A stretch of 64,000 nt of DNA from Vitrella brassicaformis CCMP3155 (taxonomy: Eukaryota > Protista > Chromerida). How positions within the stretch are numbered: position 1 is the first letter of the stretch; each line of letters opens with the position of its first letter. This document shows, one piece after another, positions 53,900 to 61,874 of this stretch. The notes beneath the pieces were generated by a model that saw only the letters and a program-made list of their open reading frames with translations, ran no database searches and was not told the DNA's origin. The stretch lies in contig CDMY01000989.1 in assembly GCA_001179505.1 (NCBI GenBank), forward strand, positions 62,001 to 126,000. The letters are read 5' to 3'. Made by a program: the position numbers and the translations under genes.

Positions 53900-54220
53900 C
53901 TTTCACGTGTGTGGCCGATATGTGCGTGTCAGGTGTTGCGGAAAGGCGTCAGCTTCGTTGGTATCAATCACACACCACAGAGATCGGTGGCGCAGTGAGC
54001 TTCGTCAATCGATGTGGGTGTGTGTTGCCATTGATCAGGTCAGAGCTGTGTGTATGTGTTCATCGACGGCCATGAAGGTAAGTGACACGTGAGCAGGCGG
54101 TCGAGTCAGTTTAGTGCAGCCATATGTATGTGTGTGTGTTGGCGATTGATTGGTGCAGGTGAGTGGCGGCTGGACAGACGTGGTGTGTGTTGGTGATGTG
54201 CGAGATACCGAGCGCATCAT
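53900..54220 (+). repeat. Fragment of the partner-gene family, inverted homolog of ~59945-59980 and 60390-60580
   Basis: gtgttgccattgatcaggtcagagctg..gaaggtaagtgacacgtgagc matches the reverse complement of 60390-60580 and encodes GQSCVYVFIDGHEG/EWRLDRRGVC. Confidence 0.8.
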
Positions 54221-54562
54221 TTGTATCTTCACGTCCGGTTGCACCGAATGCATTGGAACGTCACGCCCGATCGCTGGCCGGCCATCGGCCTGTGTGTTTT
54301 TGTCAAGTGTCGCTCATTTGTGCATAGATACATGCAGATGTTGTTACGCTCTCTTTCACATCAATGAATGGCGCTGCGCTCACACAGTCCATCCAGCCAT
54401 CCATCGCGTACAATCACATCACACCCAGCAAAAGAGCAAGAGAGCAGCATATTGAAATGCATGTGTTGGCACTTGTGGATACACACACAAGAACATGCAC
54501 ACACGGCCACTGGTCGGACACACGAATGTCCCACGCATACACACAGCCGTGCATTCCACCCG

Positions 54563-55244
54563 TCAGTTGTCTTGGATGAGCGTTCGGCGAATCTTCGCCT
54601 CTTTGTCGACGTGTATTTCGAAAGCGTTGTTGGCCCAATTAAACTCTCTGCTCACACACATACACACGGACAGAATAGCAAGCATAAGTGTAATTTGGGT
54701 CTCTTGTTGTCTGCTCATGTGGATGCCCTAATCTCGTCGGTCATACGCTCACTCCTTCGCCCACTCGACTTTGAAGTTAGTCAGCACATACTCCTGCACA
54801 CACAAGGACACCGCACACGTGCACGTCTCGTCATATATTCATGCCCGCCAGCTGCCTGCCCTTCTGCTCACCTCATCGACGCGTGGGTGGCGGGCGAACT
54901 TATCGACACCCCTCCCAAACACGCACACCTTGATGTACCCCTGCTGCCCTACATGCACACAAGATATGGCCACAGCGGCTCATCCCCTGGGCACATTTTT
55001 ATTCTCCGTGTGTGGCTTACGCTGTCGTCGCTAAGCAGCATGCTAAACATGCGCCCCACCCGGCCGTCCCGCTTCATGTAGTCTTTGATGCCCCCCCTGC
55101 ACAATTGAGGCATATACATGAGGTCGTGTGATGTGTTGTCGCTTGCGCTTACACGCGCCTCACACGCCCTCGTATGGCCGTTCGTCGGCCGGTCCTTCTC
55201 CCCACCACCAGGTCCATGATCCGGACCTCAACCACTGCACTCAT
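54563..55244 (-). CDS. Stand-alone RPA70 DBD-A-like OB-fold protein (120 aa, 5 exons)
   Basis: Exons 55244-55153, 55096-55021, 54940-54872, 54793-54753 and 54647-54563 (92/76/69/41/85 nt) are all GT-AG and phase-consistent. Product: MSAVVEVRIMDLVVGRRTGRRTAIRGRVRRVGGIKDYMKRDGRVGRMFSMLLSDDSGYIKVCVFGRGVDKFARHPRVDEEYVLTNFKVEWAKEEFNWANNAFEIHVDKEAKIRRTLIQDN*. It resembles RPA70 [26 protein letters not shown]..NDYEM. Confidence 0.82.
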
Positions 55245-55429
55245 GTGCAAAAACATCCATCACACATTGCATGGTGCTTTGCTGATGCATTCCTCTTGCA
55301 ACGAGCTTACTGGCGGTACGGCGGGGGTTGGAGTTTCTTCGTGTTGCCTTGTTGGCCAAACAGATCACCAGCAGCAGCGACGCGAATTGTGGAACACACA
55401 CACTCCGCTCGGTTTTGACCCCAAGTGGG

Positions 55430-55830
55430 GCCTGAAAACCCTTACCCTTGAAGCGCAAACCCTACTCTGCCCACCACCAACACACTAACCAAACCAAACT
55501 CCTTCGCCTCCCTTCACGGGCAGATCTACCTTCGGTTGACTGTGCCTCTCGTCGGCGAGAGAGATCTGCCGCACTCGTCGGTCAGCCAGCCATGACGCCT
55601 CTCTCTCGACAACGGGATCTCCTGGACTTGCGGCTGCCGACACCGGAGCATCCCTCTCCGTGTGCTGCCATTGCCCTTCAGCAGCCGCACTCGACCAACG
55701 ACCTGCACGCCGGGGCTGCTGACACAAACCCGAGCAGTGAGCTCCAAACTCGCGCAATGCCACACGACGGGCGAATGACACCTGTGCATCTGTCTGCTGC
55801 AGACACACAAAGGGCTGTGTTTCGCTTGCT
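55430..55830 (+). repeat. Promoter and 5' part of partner gene, inverted homolog of 60600-60970
   Basis: agatctaccttcggttgact..gagagatctgccgcactcgtcggtcagcc..atgac is shared in opposite orientation. It includes AAACCCTA at 55457-55464 and TAGGGTTT at 60939-60946. Confidence 0.85.
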
Positions 55831-56039
55831 TCGTGAGCGGAGGGCTTGGCGCTGATTGCGGACATTCTGTGTGGCCGGGGCACGCACACGGCGGCGACTT
55901 GCCTGTGTCCATCTCTGTGTGTGTGGATGTGTGTATCAGGCGTCGAGGGCGGTTGGTATCGGCGCATCACTTCACATTCTCTGCAGATAAGTCGCGTCTA
56001 CTCATCGACGGCACGTCCGTCTCACACGAATTCTCCCGT

Positions 56040-58418
56040 CTATACATCACGATAATACAGCAGGTATTCTACATACGACTGGGCTACGTCGTAGACGGCC
56101 AGCTGCACACACAAAGAGAGGGAAATCACATCAATGACGTCCCTGCTTGCGTGTGTCCGTGTCAGTGCGGCTCAGCTCACCTCGTGGTGGTGCAGTCGGA
56201 TCGCCATACTTCCCTCCCTCGCCAGCACGCTGTCGAAGCCGTGCGGTGCCGCCCGAGCATCGTTGCGGGTACTCCCGCAAGCGTCGAAGAGGCGGCCGAG
56301 GGTCACGCGGCAGAGCAGCATGACCCTCAGACCGCCCCTGCCCGGCTGGCTGAAGGCATGCACTGCATCGACACACGCATATACACATCAAGGTGAGTGA
56401 CTGCAATGGTGGACACGACATAAATGAATGGGCTGATGGGTGTCACGTGTTTCTCTCACCCTTGCAGGCCTGTGTGGCAAAGTATGAGGCGTGTCCCAGC
56501 ATCCCGCTACTCACCGATGGGTCGAGGCCGCCCGCGAAAATCCCCTGCACGCACACGTACGGACACACACAAGTCGACGCATCACATGCATTGTCCATCC
56601 CCTTGTTGTCTGTTGTCTGTCCGTCTGTGTGCTTACCTCTACAGCATCCAGCTTCGTGCCGTGGAACATGTAGTACTCATTTATCGACGGGTCTACGCCC
56701 GTGCCGTCCACCGGCCCCTCGTCACCCTCTTCCCCCATCGCCCTGGCGAGCTGGTGGGTGGGCACACCCATGTCGGCCAAAGTGCGCATGCCGCCGCTGC
56801 CGGCCCGGCCCGCCCTGATGGCCTCCCTCGCCACGTAGGCGCTCGCGTGGTGTTGGTGCCACACACGCAGCACCCGCACCACGCCGGTGTTGAGGAGGGA
56901 GCCGATGTGGCGGCAGTGGCAGTGGCCATGGCGGCGGTGTCCATGGGACGTGCGGCGCAGCAGGTCGCTGAAAAGCGCCACCGTTGCGGCCGTGACGTCC
57001 TCCAGGACGTACCCTGGCCCCTGCAGGACGGGGAAGGGGGACGGGCTGGGGATGTGCTGGGCGGGAGCAACGGCAGCAACGCCGTGGATTGCCACAACGG
57101 CGACCATCTGATGAAATGAGCAAGGAGAAGACACTCACTTCGGCAAAGAGGCGTTTGAGGATTGAATCTACGTGGATGGGTCGGTGTCGTCGGGCGCCAG
57201 CAGCACCACCGCCAGCAGCGGGGGCTGGGGGAGCTTGAGCAGCAGCAGGTGGGGCGGGGGCAGCCGGGGGGAGCGCACCTGAAGAGTGAGACATCGAAGA
57301 GGAAGTTCTATCCGTGTGTATGCGTGCAACGGGGGCTTCATATCATGTGATGGATGCGTACACTCTCGTATGATGGTCTCGGTCTCGAGGTATATCTCGT
57401 AGCGATGGCCTGTCGTGTTGTATTGCCTGAGGAAGGAGAAACAGACAGTGTGTTGCATGACGCGTCCACGTCTCTGTCCATAATCGTGTTGACTTGTTTT
57501 TGTGTTTGACGGTGAAGTCGGCTAGGCAGTATTTCTGTCAACAGCACATAGACCAATAAATACATCGGCAGATTCTCAAGGCCTTCCTGTCTGTCCATGA
57601 ATGTCGCCCATCTTACTTTGTCCTTGGCCATCTTGTTGTAGTGTGCGGCGGCGGCCTGCCCGAAGGCGCACACCTTTATGTCCTCCTGACATCAACACAC
57701 AAGTCATGAATGCGACACACACATCGAATGGTCATTATCTTGCTCTGTGCTCACCTGCCCTTGTCTTAAGTGTAGAGAAAAACATGCTGCTGCCGTTGCT
57801 GCAGGTGCCCAGCTGCGATCTGGACAGTGAGACACATCAGATGATAGAGAAAGAATCAAATGGCGGCCGCAAGCCCTCGCTGCATCCCATCCTGTGCTTG
57901 CAGGCACTCACATTGACGTCACCGTGGCCTCGATGACCTGCATCGCCGACCGCCCGACCCGCAGGTCGGCAAGCAGCATGGGCTGCCGCTCAGCGGCGGT
58001 GGCGTGCAGGTGCCTGCCACGCCTGAGCGAACACATACACATCATATATGTGTGCGTGTTCAACCTTCATTGCAATGCAATCCCTACCCGTCGCCTCGGA
58101 CATGGACGTTTTTGATGACTATGCAGTCCCCCTTCTCTATGTCCCTGGCCGCCGGCAGGTCGATGGGTATGAGGGCCGTGCGACTCCCGTCATGAACTAT
58201 ACACCTACAGTTGCATGCATCATGCATGCCGTCATACATCGTCTGTCAGCTAGGCAAGGCACACATGCAGTAAAGCAGTCTTTATATATACTCTCGTGGA
58301 TTGCTTACTTGAGCTCAGCGGGGGTCTTGTTGATGATCTTTGCCACCCGCAGCTTCCTGGACTCCCTCCCTTGCCCCGTGAGCAACCCAACTATGTCCAA
58401 TGGCGTTGCCGCCGCCAT
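56040..58418 (-). CDS. RPA70-like OB-fold(s) fused to a tankyrase-like PARP (ADP-ribosyltransferase) catalytic domain; 12 exons, ~505 aa, one 1-nt phase anomaly in exon 4
   Basis: Exons 58418-58309, 58204-58088, 58022-57912, 57819-57755, 57685-57617, 57534-57494, 57426-57362, 57278-57139, 57107-56637, 56544-56460, 56362-56181 and 56102-56040 are all GT-AG. OB part: LLADLRVG..IEATVTSISQ..FSLHLRQGQEDIKVCAFG..KYCLADFTVKHKNKQYNTTGHRYEIYLETETIIREC. PARP part: NEYYMFHGT..GLDP..GMLGHASYFA..VMLLCRVTLG..APHGFDSV..HELAVYDVAQSYVEYLLYY*. Confidence 0.85.
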
Positions 58419-58759
58419 GGCTGTCTCCTCCTCTCCTGCGAAGCCTGTCGGCTCCTGTCGACGTCTCTGCTGTTGGGCGAAGCGCAGGCGATTGAACAGC
58501 TTTGAATGAGCAGCTGTTGTTGTGTGGGCGGCTGGCTTTTCTGGCCCCCCGTCTCATAGCTCGCGTGATTTACAAACCCGGAGGAAGGGGGCGAATTCGA
58601 AGGGCAAGAGGGTGTGTCGAGGCAGCACGGGGCAAGCTGTGAGGGCGCAATCACTTTTCCCCGCCTCTGGTCTGCACCCAGCTGGGTCTGCACACTTTGG
58701 ATCTGCCGCACCCGGCGGTCTCATTCATCCATCATCCATCAGGAAGAGCCAGATCTCTG

Positions 58760-59518
58760 ATGGGTAAGCAGCAGCGGCAGCGTCGTCGTGCCGGCAAGGG
58801 AGCCCATCAGCCGATGGTCACGAGTCAGGACCTGCGGGAGGCGGCCGAGCAGCACGCCATGCAGGAGATTATGACCAGATGACACGACTACTTTGACGAG
58901 ACCATCGTCACAAAGGCAAGGCCATACAGCAAGCACAAGAGGTGCATGAATGGCTGTCGATGGCTGTCTGTGTGGTTCCATCAGCTGAACAGCACCGACT
59001 GGCGGACGCGGGAGCTGTCGTGCATAGCTCTTAGCAACATCCTCTCAGACCCATCGTTCGTCTATTTCAGCGGTTTCTGTGGATTGTGTTGGAGTGTGCG
59101 GCCGACAGCAAGACGCCCACACTCGTCCTCGTGGAACTCCTCGATGCGCTCTTCGACGTCTTCGCCGGTCAGTGTGGTTGGGGCATCCACACACACACAC
59201 ACACACACACACACGAGCCACCATGCATCTGTGCGTGCGTGTGTGTATGTGTGGTCAGAGGATGACAGCAACGATCTGCTGCGTGACGCGGATGCAATCA
59301 AGACCCTCGGCAGACTCAAGGGGCCCCTCAAGAGAGCGGTCAGCACACACACACACACACACGGACTCACACACACATCAGCAGATCTGCATGGCCATTG
59401 ATGCGTGCAGGTGCGGGGCAGGTCAGTGGCATTTGACGAGTCGAGTGTGTGTCGTGTGGAGGAGGTGGCCGACAACCTTGAGGCCTTCATCGACTACAAG
59501 AGACAACACAACACATAG
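58760..59518 (+). pseudogene. HEATR3: HEATR3/Syo1-like pseudogene with premature stop and large internal deletion
   Basis: MGKQQRQRRR N-terminus, an in-frame TGA at 58880-58882, and KLNSTDWRTRELSCIALSNIL. This joins almost directly to the C-terminal ELLDALFDVFA..EEVADNLEAFIDYK typical of HEATR3/Syo1. The central HEAT repeats are absent. Confidence 0.7.
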
Positions 59519-60079
59519 ACAGATTATCGCTATGGCAATGCAGCCGCCGAGAGGGGGAGCTACGTGGCTTGTCGCCCGTCATCACATTCTACGCCATACA
59601 CACCCTCACAGGCTCTTTACGCATGCAGGTTTGCGCGTGTTTGTGTGTTGCATGCAGTTGCGAGGGAGGTGCCCTGCGTGCGACATGGGTGCTGTGTATG
59701 CCGAATCGCTGACTGACCCATCGGCAGATGATGGTCGCCAATTCGGTCGCCTGCGGTTTCTGCGTGTATGACTGTGTGTGAAGGCGTTTCTCACTGCTGG
59801 ATGCAGTTCACTATGCATTGCTGGGTCGATAGCGTCCACAATCGAAAGACACACCAGATGATCGTCAATGTTGTCTGGAAGCCCCAAATCTAGGGATGTC
59901 TTCACACACCTTCCACGCATAAAAAAAGTCATCCCGACCCTCCGCAACACCTGACACGCACGTATCGGCCACACACGGAAAAGACAAGTCAGCACCGCTC
60001 CTGTGGAAGACAATGCCAGCTGTCTGTCAGTCTACTCACCCATCACATTCACATCAGAAGCGACACACACACACGCACA

Positions 60080-60825
60080 CCACCCACCTACAAGGCACCG
60101 CCCCGCCTCCTTCAAGGCTGCTGATCATCGGTCACCTCCCTGTCTCTCTCTCTACCGCCCCACTCACACCTCGCCCATCCCCCCCCTCACCCATATGTGA
60201 TTGGCTAGTAGAATGCTCTTTGCCTGCCGTACTCATCCGTCCACACCCCGACGGGCTGTGGTGGCACGTAGAGCACCGCCTGCAGCACGCGCCAGCCGCC
60301 CCTGCCGCTCGACACTTTGGCGACGGTCTCGATCGACGTCATAGCCGGCCGATGACTGGACTTGATTGACCTGTGCGGCTGATGGGAGTCGGTATCTCGC
60401 ACATCACACACACCACGTCTGTCCAGCCGCCACTCACCTGCACCAATCAATCGCCAACACACAGACATACATATGGCTGCACTAAACTGACTCGACCGCC
60501 AGCTCACGTGTCACTTACCTTCGTGGCCGTCGATGAACACTTACACGCAGCTCTGACCTGATCAATGGCAACACACACCCACACACACACACACACACAG
60601 ATGTCTCGATTGCCTTCTGTGTGTCCGTCTGACTGTCCATCCAGGTATGAACAGACGCACACAGCAGGTCCCGAGGCCAGTCAGCGCCGATGGGTCGGTG
60701 TGCAGCTCCGTCATGCAGGTCGTTGGTCGAGTGCGGCTGCTGAAGGGCAATGGCAGCACACGGAGAGGGATGCCGCGGACCGGTAGCCGCAAGACCAGCA
60801 CATCCCGTTGTCGAGAGAAAGTCAT
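60080..60825 (-). pseudogene. Partner gene of unknown function, inactivated
   Basis: MTFSRQRD.. / GQSCV*VFIDGHEG (TAT->TAA versus the 54 kb copy) / EWRLDRRGVC..WRVLQAVLYVPPQPVGVWTDEYGRQRAFY*. Head-to-head with the 61159 OB gene. Confidence 0.5.
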
Positions 60826-61158
60826 GGCGGGCTGACCGACGAGTGCGGCAGATCTCTCTCGTCGACGAGAGGCAAAGTCAACCGAAGGTAGATCTCGCTG
60901 CCGGGAAAGGTGGCCCCAAACCCTTGCTGCGGGCCAAGTAGGGTTTGCGCTTCAAGGGTAAAGGTTTTCCAGCCCCCCGGGTGCGTCTCGGAATCAGATC
61001 GGTGGGCTCTTTCGAGGCCATCTCTGTTGCTGCTGCTGACGCTCTCTCTTTGCTGCTGCGGCGTCAAATCGTTTCAAACGAAACTCGTCTGCTGCCCGAC
61101 ACTGCCAAGAGTAAGGCCCAGTTCGAGGCCGAACTCCATGCGCAACGCTCTTTTGTGT

Positions 61159-61874
61159 ATGGCTGCAGTGGTCTGGGCGCCCATCACCGACCTGCGGCCG
61201 GGCCGGAGGGTGGGGAGAAGGGCCATGAAGGGGATCGTCACCCGTGTGTAAGCGACAAGCTCATCTGTGCCCAATCTGTGCAGATCGCCGACCTCTCGAT
61301 GCACTGATGCATGAGATGCTTTGGTGCATGCATGCATGCGCAGGAGCCCCGTCAAGGCCTACAGGAAGGGGGACGGCACACAGGGCCGTATGTTTAGTCT
61401 ACTCATGACGGACGAAAGCGTAAGCAAACGAATACGCACACATGATGAGGGCTCCACGTGCATTATCATGTGCATGCAGGGCAGCGTCAAGGTCTGTGTG
61501 TTCGGCAATGGGGTGCTCAAGTTCAGCCACCATCCGCTGCCGGGCGAGGTGAGCCGAAGGGAACGGGCACCATGAGTGATTCCGAGACGTGTACTTGTGT
61601 GTATGTCGTTGATGTGTGTGTGCCCTGCGTGTGCAGGAATTCATCCTGACCAACTTCAAAGTGCTCCCCGCAAAGCAGTGAGCAATTGGATGTCAACCAC
61701 AGAGACATACACACACACTCGTACACGGCCGGAGCAGGGCTGTTATGTATGTGTGTGATATGTGTGTGATATGTGTGTGTGTGACCATGCAGAGAATTCA
61801 ACTGGGCAGAGAACGCTTTCGAGGTGCACCTCGATGGCGCGCCGCGCCACATAAGTGTCCGAGTGTGCGTGTGA
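61159..61874 (+). CDS. Stand-alone RPA70 DBD-A-like OB-fold protein (118 aa, 5 exons)
   Basis: Exons 61159-61247, 61344-61419, 61480-61548, 61637-61677 and 61793-61874 (89/76/69/41/82 nt) are phase-consistent. Product: MAAVVWAPITDLRPGRRVGRRAMKGIVTRVSPVKAYRKGDGTQGRMFSLLMTDESGSVKVCVFGNGVLKFSHHPLPGEEFILTNFKVLPAKQEFNWAENAFEVHLDGAPRHISVRVCV*. Confidence 0.82.

Follow-up and report, generated by a model that had tools for sequence, protein, structure and literature searches.

A predicted fusion of RPA-type OB folds to a PARP catalytic domain in the chromerid alga Vitrella brassicaformis

Results

A twelve-exon reading frame on the minus strand

This work concerns a predicted minus-strand gene in a window of 64,000 nucleotides (nt) from Vitrella brassicaformis CCMP3155 (GCA_001179505.1, contig CDMY01000989.1; record coordinate = window coordinate + 62000), in which two OB folds precede a catalytic domain of the PARP family. 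We refer to this gene as copy A, to distinguish it from a damaged paralogue, copy B, which is located further along the same contig. The contig record (L003) and the window are identical across 12,863 overlapping bases.

An earlier note, made from the letters of the window alone, had proposed a model with twelve exons, a single junction out of phase and a product of about 505 residues. When this model was rebuilt, all twelve minus-strand exons were recovered at the positions proposed, each with GT..AG borders, and all 22 splice dinucleotides turned out to be kept in copy A (Table 1). The one out-of-phase junction was also recovered; it is that between exons 4 and 5, which is shifted by +1 if exon 4 starts at the acceptor at 57819 (65-nt exon). 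When exon 4 is read from 57812, using an AG 7 nt downstream that is also the acceptor in the GenBank model CEM38570.1 (P0003), this junction falls into phase. The coding sequence corrected in this way comprises 1425 nt and 474 codons, contains a stop codon only at its end and has junctions that are all GT-AG and in phase, so that a product of 474 residues replaces the longer one suggested before.

Table 1. Exons of copy A and other features of the locus (window coordinates unless stated otherwise)
Feature	Position	Strand	Remarks
Exon 1	58309..58418	-	ATG at 58418; start of OB fold 1; first exon common to CEM38570.1 (P0003)
Exon 2	58088..58204	-	Remainder of OB fold 1, residues about 20-85
Exon 3	57912..58022	-	Start of OB fold 2, RPA70 DBD-A-like
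Exon 4	57755..57812	-	Corrected acceptor (earlier note: 57755..57819)
Exon 5	57617..57685	-	EDIKVCAF...; F140 at RPA70 F238 position
Exon 6	57494..57534	-	Weak donor GTCAAC; omitted from GenBank model
Exon 7	57362..57426	-	QYNTTGHRYEIYLE...; Y171 at RPA70 F269 position; omitted from GenBank model
Exon 8	57139..57278	-	Pro/Ala-rich linker, then basic tail
Exon 9	56637..57020	-	N-terminal half of predicted PARP catalytic domain; His357 at 56663-56661
Exon 10	56460..56544	-	PARP; Tyr386 at 56484-56482
Exon 11	56181..56362	-	PARP, LLCRVTLG...; Glu454 at 56183-56181
Exon 12	56040..56102	-	Final PARP strand and stop codon 56042-56040
Antisense spliced RNA	55506..57534	+	Five GT-AG introns; RNA contigs X1, X7, L001, L002
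Antisense introns	55737-55802, 55833-55939, 56064-56165, 56393-56467, 56557-56644	+	GT-AG; 55833-55939 sometimes retained
Left OB-only paralogue	54563..55244	-	Single RPA70 DBD-A-like OB; fused to PARP gene in CEM38568.1
Right OB-only paralogue (P0002)	61138..61874	+	125 residues; UniRef 'OB domain-containing protein'
TPR_SYO1 remnant	58732-59523	+	95-residue gene made of the two ends of a 768-residue gene; ~2.9 kb of interior gone
Copy B (P0005)	L004 8001-10167 = CDMY01000989.1 182184-184350		56 kb beyond window; pseudogene, annotated as 353-residue 'PARP catalytic domain-containing protein'

Exons 3-7 resemble DBD-A of RPA70

The second OB fold of copy A, which the earlier note had aligned with DBD-A of RPA70, is, by sequence comparison, a true homologue of this domain that has kept both base-stacking aromatics. 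A profile (A1) built from the right OB-only paralogue P0002 and from segments of three GenBank models (residues 38-146 of P0005 from copy B, residues 296-362 of CEM38568.1 (P0004) and residues 77-156 of P0003) matched, along the whole domain, RPA70 DBD-A of Ustilago (E = 7.7e-11), yeast (4.2e-9) and human (1.5e-7) in the PDB, thereby bearing out the proposed assignment. The DBD-A entries hit were 4gnx_C, 1ynx, 1jmc, 1fgu and 8rk2 (E = 7.7e-11 to 4.7e-7), and the match in full-length human RPA70 corresponds to residues 201-289. On its own, P0002 identified yeast Rfa1 DBD-A (E = 6.5e-5), Ustilago RPA70 (1.8e-4) and human DBD-A (0.008). The alignment of exons 3-7 with P0002 extends over 90 residues with no gap (26% identity, 42 bits), and within it the two genes have their four introns at identical positions. 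The OB region of copy B alone gave a single match in the PDB, again Rfa1 DBD-A (1ynx), at E = 0.18, with KQY paired to PQF. At the base-stacking positions, KVCAF is matched to RATAF, and NKQY to KPQF or KKQF, placing the two aromatics singled out by the earlier note (in VCAF and KQY) at F140 and Y171, whose human counterparts we take to be F238 and F269.

The first OB fold is less clearly defined. For exons 1-2, Pfam returned only a weak match to POT1PC (E = 0.16-0.26). In the ESM Atlas, residues 1-90 of P0003 came closest (TM by query 0.72-0.80; feature score 0.92) to clusters labelled RPA, tRNA_anti-codon and OB_Ssb-like, with Rep-A_N absent among them. A single-sequence AF2 model of residues 1-113 was discarded because of its pLDDT of 40. 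As a lead, exons 1-2 may thus encode a generic OB fold of the SSB/RPA type; the part of the original assignment that named an OB fold is retained at this level, whereas its attribution to RPA70N in particular is not indicated.

PDB searches with the OB region and profile A1 gave no match to DBD-B or DBD-C, and only two OB units precede the linker. The predicted product therefore lacks the canonical RPA70 layout (RPA70N, DBD-A, DBD-B and DBD-C with its zinc motif) and is not an RPA70 orthologue. It resembles RPA70/Rfa1 (PDB 1jmc, 1fgu, 1ynx, 4gnx_C) in the homology of OB fold 2 over the whole domain, including F140 and Y171, but differs in that it has no DBD-B, no zinc motif-containing DBD-C and no recognisable RPA70N and is joined to an enzyme domain; its OB fold 2 shares only ~26% identity even with its OB-only neighbours.

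Exons 9-12 are predicted to encode a complete PARP domain

The catalytic half was analysed on GenBank protein CEM38568.1, in which exons 9-12 are spliced exactly as proposed before and which was reached through the protein cluster of P0001, an open reading frame (ORF) call on an antisense-spliced transcript described below. This protein matched Pfam PF00644 with 47.2 bits against a gathering cutoff of 26.7 (E = 2.4e-12) and, in the PDB, PARP4 (5.9e-5), tankyrase-1 (7.6e-5) and also PARP12. The tankyrase-1 alignment pairs FHGT with FHGS, SYFA with IYFA and HELAVY with AEYVIY, so that the histidine, tyrosine and glutamate of the H-Y-E triad are all placed; their codons lie exactly where the earlier note had put them. 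An ESM Atlas model of residues 28-266 superimposed 214-225 residues onto PARP clusters with a TM of 0.79-0.83. Exons 9-12 thus encode a PARP catalytic domain with an H-Y-E triad, as had been suggested, and the predicted models lend moderate support to the completeness of its fold.

Single exons were too short to give any match in Pfam. Exon 11 alone nevertheless identified only PARPs in the PDB (PARP4 at E = 0.05, tankyrase-1 at 0.2-0.7). With exon 9, phmmer found nothing in the PDB and, among 1.84 billion representative proteins, nothing below E = 0.001 except P0001, which derives from the locus's own transcript; back-translated scans of JGI metagenome contigs and viral contigs returned no relative. 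The N-terminal half of the domain is thus very divergent in sequence. The nearest relative from outside is a EukProt transcript protein (P0006) with two PARP domains, which shows 31% identity over residues 49-236 (BLASTP).

Ahead of the catalytic domain, a helical regulatory domain is absent, and the linker encoded by exon 8 comprises ~47 Pro/Ala-rich residues with basic residues at its end. In its complete ART (ADP-ribosyltransferase) fold, its H-Y-E triad and the lack of a preceding helical domain, the predicted enzyme resembles tankyrase-1/2 and PARP4. It differs from them in having no ankyrin, SAM, vWA or BRCT domains and in lacking the tankyrase zinc-binding insert, at whose place the alignment shows a gap. 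The earlier label "tankyrase-type" therefore holds for the triad and the missing helical domain, but not for the ankyrin repeats, the SAM domain and the zinc insert. Whether the product would be a polymer or a single unit is not readable from the H-Y-E triad alone.

A damaged second copy and possible signs of selection

Copy B (Table 1) is represented in GenBank by one model, P0005, that unites OB, linker and PARP exons. At the DNA level, it is 88-100% identical to copy A in most exons, and every intron is common to both copies. It has nevertheless suffered a 1-nt deletion in exon 2, a 1-nt insertion in exon 5, the replacement of GT by AT at the intron 8 donor and indels in exon 10. In exon 9, large deletions and several indels have removed the 3' end and the donor; the histidine motif of copy B reads MSHGT and is left out of P0005. 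In total, at least six disabling events in copy B compare with at most one in copy A (~1.4 kb) at the same divergence.

Overall, the raw ratio of non-synonymous to synonymous substitution rates (dN/dS) between the copies is 0.41; taken separately, the OB exons give 0.60, the linker 0.90 and the PARP exons 0.29. Measured against the divergence of the introns, base class by base class, the OB exons proved strongly conserved, with 8 differences at codon positions 1+2 where 32.6 were expected. At position 3, the PARP exons carried an excess (22 observed, 12.3 expected). Since their signal consists of this third-position excess against the intron rate, the low dN/dS of the PARP exons is not solid evidence of constraint, and a better case for copy A comes from the unequal numbers of disabling events in the two copies.

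Differences seen in two DNA runs (X2 and X3), among them a 1-base deletion restoring the phase of exon 4, were considered as strain alleles and rejected, 17 of 19 being copy-B states. The X2 and X3 contigs over window positions 57310-58019 are mosaics of copies A and B and thus uninformative on strains. Contigs in recently duplicated regions can pass for alleles.

Antisense spliced RNA across the catalytic half

RNA evidence came from Logan contigs of two RNA-like runs (X1 and X7) and from two transcript contigs, L001 (JGI 3300017148, an MMETSP transcript) and L002. These contigs match the locus at 99.8-100%, those from X1 and X7 covering only about 55800-57530, and they reveal a spliced RNA of the opposite, plus strand (Table 1). 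The introns at 56064-56165, 56393-56467 and 56557-56644 follow from three contig joints, that at 55833-55939 from a loose end and that at 55737-55802 from L001. No convincing protein-like ORF was found in the plus-strand spliced RNA, and a protein-coding gene on this strand was rejected as its source for this reason. Minus-strand CT-AC introns were rejected as well, as the RNA junctions would displace the borders of the exons by 8-39 nt and so disrupt the frame of the PARP domain. Consistent with this, P0001 ends in ...KLDGVRAGDFRGRPRPIGE*, where removal of a plus-strand intron breaks the PARP frame.

Three of the antisense introns nearly coincide with introns of the sense strand: 56064-56165, 56393-56467 and 56557-56644 cover the larger part of sense intron 11 (56103-56180), intron 10 (56363-56459) and intron 9 (56545-56636), respectively.

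The most 5' part of the antisense RNA in the contigs, 55506-55736, lies within the repeat that precedes the left OB-only gene. Such a position of its 5' sequence suggests that the RNA arises by divergent transcription at the promoter of that gene.

Genomic neighbourhood

Copy A is flanked on both sides by an inverted duplication, whose arms lie at about 53900-55720 and 59941-61834. Each arm contains one outward-pointing single-OB gene of ~120 residues, and the upstream regions of the two are 89-97% complementary. In these OB-only paralogues, the intron corresponding to that after exon 6 has the donor GTGAGC, whereas copies A and B have GTCAAC; a second GT 27 nt downstream of the exon 6 donor (57493) would also preserve the frame. 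Next to copy A, TPR_SYO1 is reduced to its two ends, whereas the gene beside copy B is whole (768 residues; L004 3534-7240). Copy A therefore lies in the more rearranged segment.

Discussion

Our analysis leads us to read the locus, tentatively and with a rough probability of 45%, as a fused, Vitrella-specific gene that encodes two OB folds and a PARP domain and is silent in culture. At the level of the ORF, the architecture is real: copy A combines 474 open codons, uninterrupted phase at all junctions and the H-Y-E triad, and P0005 joins OB and PARP exons in the model of its paralogue.

Several observations weigh against this reading. None of the predicted sense junctions is present in the RNA contigs (X1, X7, L001 and L002), RNA depth is zero over exons 1-5 in the two transcriptome assemblies, and the contigs run unspliced through predicted introns 6, 7 and 8, the only introns in the RNA, across the PARP exons, being those of the plus strand. 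A run search with 57600-58430 returned DNA-like runs only and no RNA run, and neither the 1.84 billion representative proteins nor a 5.8-billion-protein set, the latter searched through a word index, yielded a protein derived from a sense-spliced transcript. Provisionally, then, the contigs contain antisense spliced RNA only and no transcript joining the OB exons to the PARP exons, an outcome that the earlier note had itself named as speaking against its proposal; as Logan contigs show presence rather than absence, and the data stem from two culture transcriptomes, this silence is weak negative evidence. The gene model has its own difficulties, given that the exon 6 donor GTCAAC is weak (and identical in copy B) and that an alternative exon 4 acceptor is needed, which swaps the first 9-10 residues encoded by this exon. 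Moreover, GenBank places two minus-strand genes at the locus, CEM38570.1 and CEM38568.1, and the nearby paralogue, copy B, has plainly decayed. In the comparison of copies A and B, finally, codon positions 1+2 of the PARP exons diverge at a near-neutral rate (23 differences observed, 26.1 expected), and the divergence of the linker exon looks neutral.

Several of these points would also be expected of a recently silenced relic, that is, of a once working gene that was segmentally duplicated and is now being lost in both local copies, with copy B broken, copy A transcriptionally dead and the antisense RNA a by-product of the neighbour's promoter. The missing sense RNA in the contigs, the weak exon 6 donor and the PARP non-synonymous sites, which diverge at about the intron rate, are all in line with this scenario, as is the location of copy A in a rearranged stretch with inverted duplications and the ends of TPR_SYO1 at 58732-59523. 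An extra T in exon 4 (TT at 57769/57768 in copy A, a single T in copy B) further breaks the frame that is homologous to the paralogue. The downstream acceptor, however, bypasses this position and restores the frame, and exon 4 read from 57812 yields a stretch, FSLHL, that resembles FSLLM of P0002 and FSMLL of the left paralogue at the same place. In addition, the retention of 474 open codons, 22 splice dinucleotides and the H-Y-E triad in copy A, as opposed to the at least six disabling events accumulated by copy B at the same divergence, speaks against decay of both copies, and codon positions 1+2 of the OB exons are four-fold more conserved than the introns. On balance, we consider it somewhat less likely that copy A is a very recent relic than that it is a silent fused gene.

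The GenBank models raise the question of whether the locus instead comprises two genes on the same strand, one for a two-OB protein similar to CEM38570.1 that ends near exon 7 or 8 and one for a stand-alone PARP starting at the ATG at 57107. Such a division would agree with the extent of the two models (57168-58418 for P0003; start at 57107 for P0004) and with the neutral evolution of the linker exon. The segment 57107-57021 also extends the frame of exon 9 upstream without a stop; its sole indel relative to copy B is 33 nt long, a multiple of three. The models themselves, however, appear to be wrongly constructed. CEM38570.1 (191 residues) contains exons 1-5 but passes over exons 6 and 7, the source of the last OB strands, for which the paralogues have homologous counterparts; exon 8 is then read in the wrong frame as far as a TAG. 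CEM38568.1 (387 residues; 54781-57107) takes its ATG from predicted intron 8, proceeds through exons 9-12 and then uses a GT at the stop codon to continue into the 5' exon and the coding exons of the left OB-only gene, the last ones again out of frame. Both look like predictor compromises rather than transcript-based models and are backed neither by sense RNA nor by any of the observed RNA junctions. Moreover, the OB unit of copy A has no stop codon soon after its last strand, unlike the OB-only paralogues, but an in-phase GT donor in its place. We therefore regard two separate genes as improbable. The GenBank gene models at the locus need correction, and the combination of antisense spliced RNA and recent duplications illustrates how annotation can be misled.

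It is least probable, in our view, that the OB folds read poly(ADP-ribose) (PAR) rather than ssDNA (single-stranded DNA), with the enzyme binding its own or another PARP's product to spread the signal in a feed-forward manner. In favour of such a role, binding of PAR with an affinity close to that for ssDNA has been reported for the OB folds of SSB1, BRCA2, CTC1 and MEIOB (review PMC6953017), and the Atlas clusters closest to OB fold 1 are OB_Ssb-like. Against it, OB fold 2 has retained the two aromatics with which DBD-A of RPA70 stacks on bases.

If the fused gene that we favour is functional, the OB pair would hold the enzyme on exposed single-stranded nucleic acid, and the flexible linker could allow an always-open catalytic domain to ADP-ribosylate itself, neighbouring proteins or nucleic acid. 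Because copy A appears silent in culture and its PARP half is covered by spliced antisense RNA, its expression may be conditional rather than constitutive. ADP-ribosylation by this protein might then be triggered by ssDNA, as the earlier note had envisaged. It is tempting to go further and to picture a PARP family of Vitrella's own that senses single-stranded nucleic acid through RPA-type OB folds, with copy A as an inducible member that is switched off in culture, restrained by antisense RNA and turned on under replication stress, DNA damage or infection to modify proteins or nucleic acid at ssDNA; we consider this scenario unlikely. A literature search found no paper describing an RPA-OB-PARP enzyme; a preprint of 2026 names OB folds as accessory modules of ARTs but gives no detail.

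The proposed arrangement recalls known systems in concept only. PARP1/2/3 likewise couple a nucleic-acid sensor to a PARP catalytic domain. In these enzymes, breaks are detected by zinc fingers and WGR domains, and autoinhibition by the helical domain is relieved in the process. The predicted Vitrella protein has OB folds and neither a WGR nor a helical domain, and an allosteric activation of the PARP1/2/3 kind would therefore not be expected. Bacterial DarT, which forms part of a toxin-antitoxin system, directs ADP-ribosylation at ssDNA; it belongs to a different ART clade and has no OB fold, and we claim no homology to it.

To our knowledge, all well-studied DNA-dependent PARPs rely on zinc fingers and WGR domains for the sensing of breaks. 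The tethering of a PARP to OB folds of the RPA type would represent a different solution, in which single-stranded nucleic acid is read directly and no autoinhibitory helical domain is involved. If active, the enzyme would provide a simple and testable model for the targeting of ADP-ribosylation to ssDNA in eukaryotes and would be a further sign that PARP architectures have diversified in chromerid algae.

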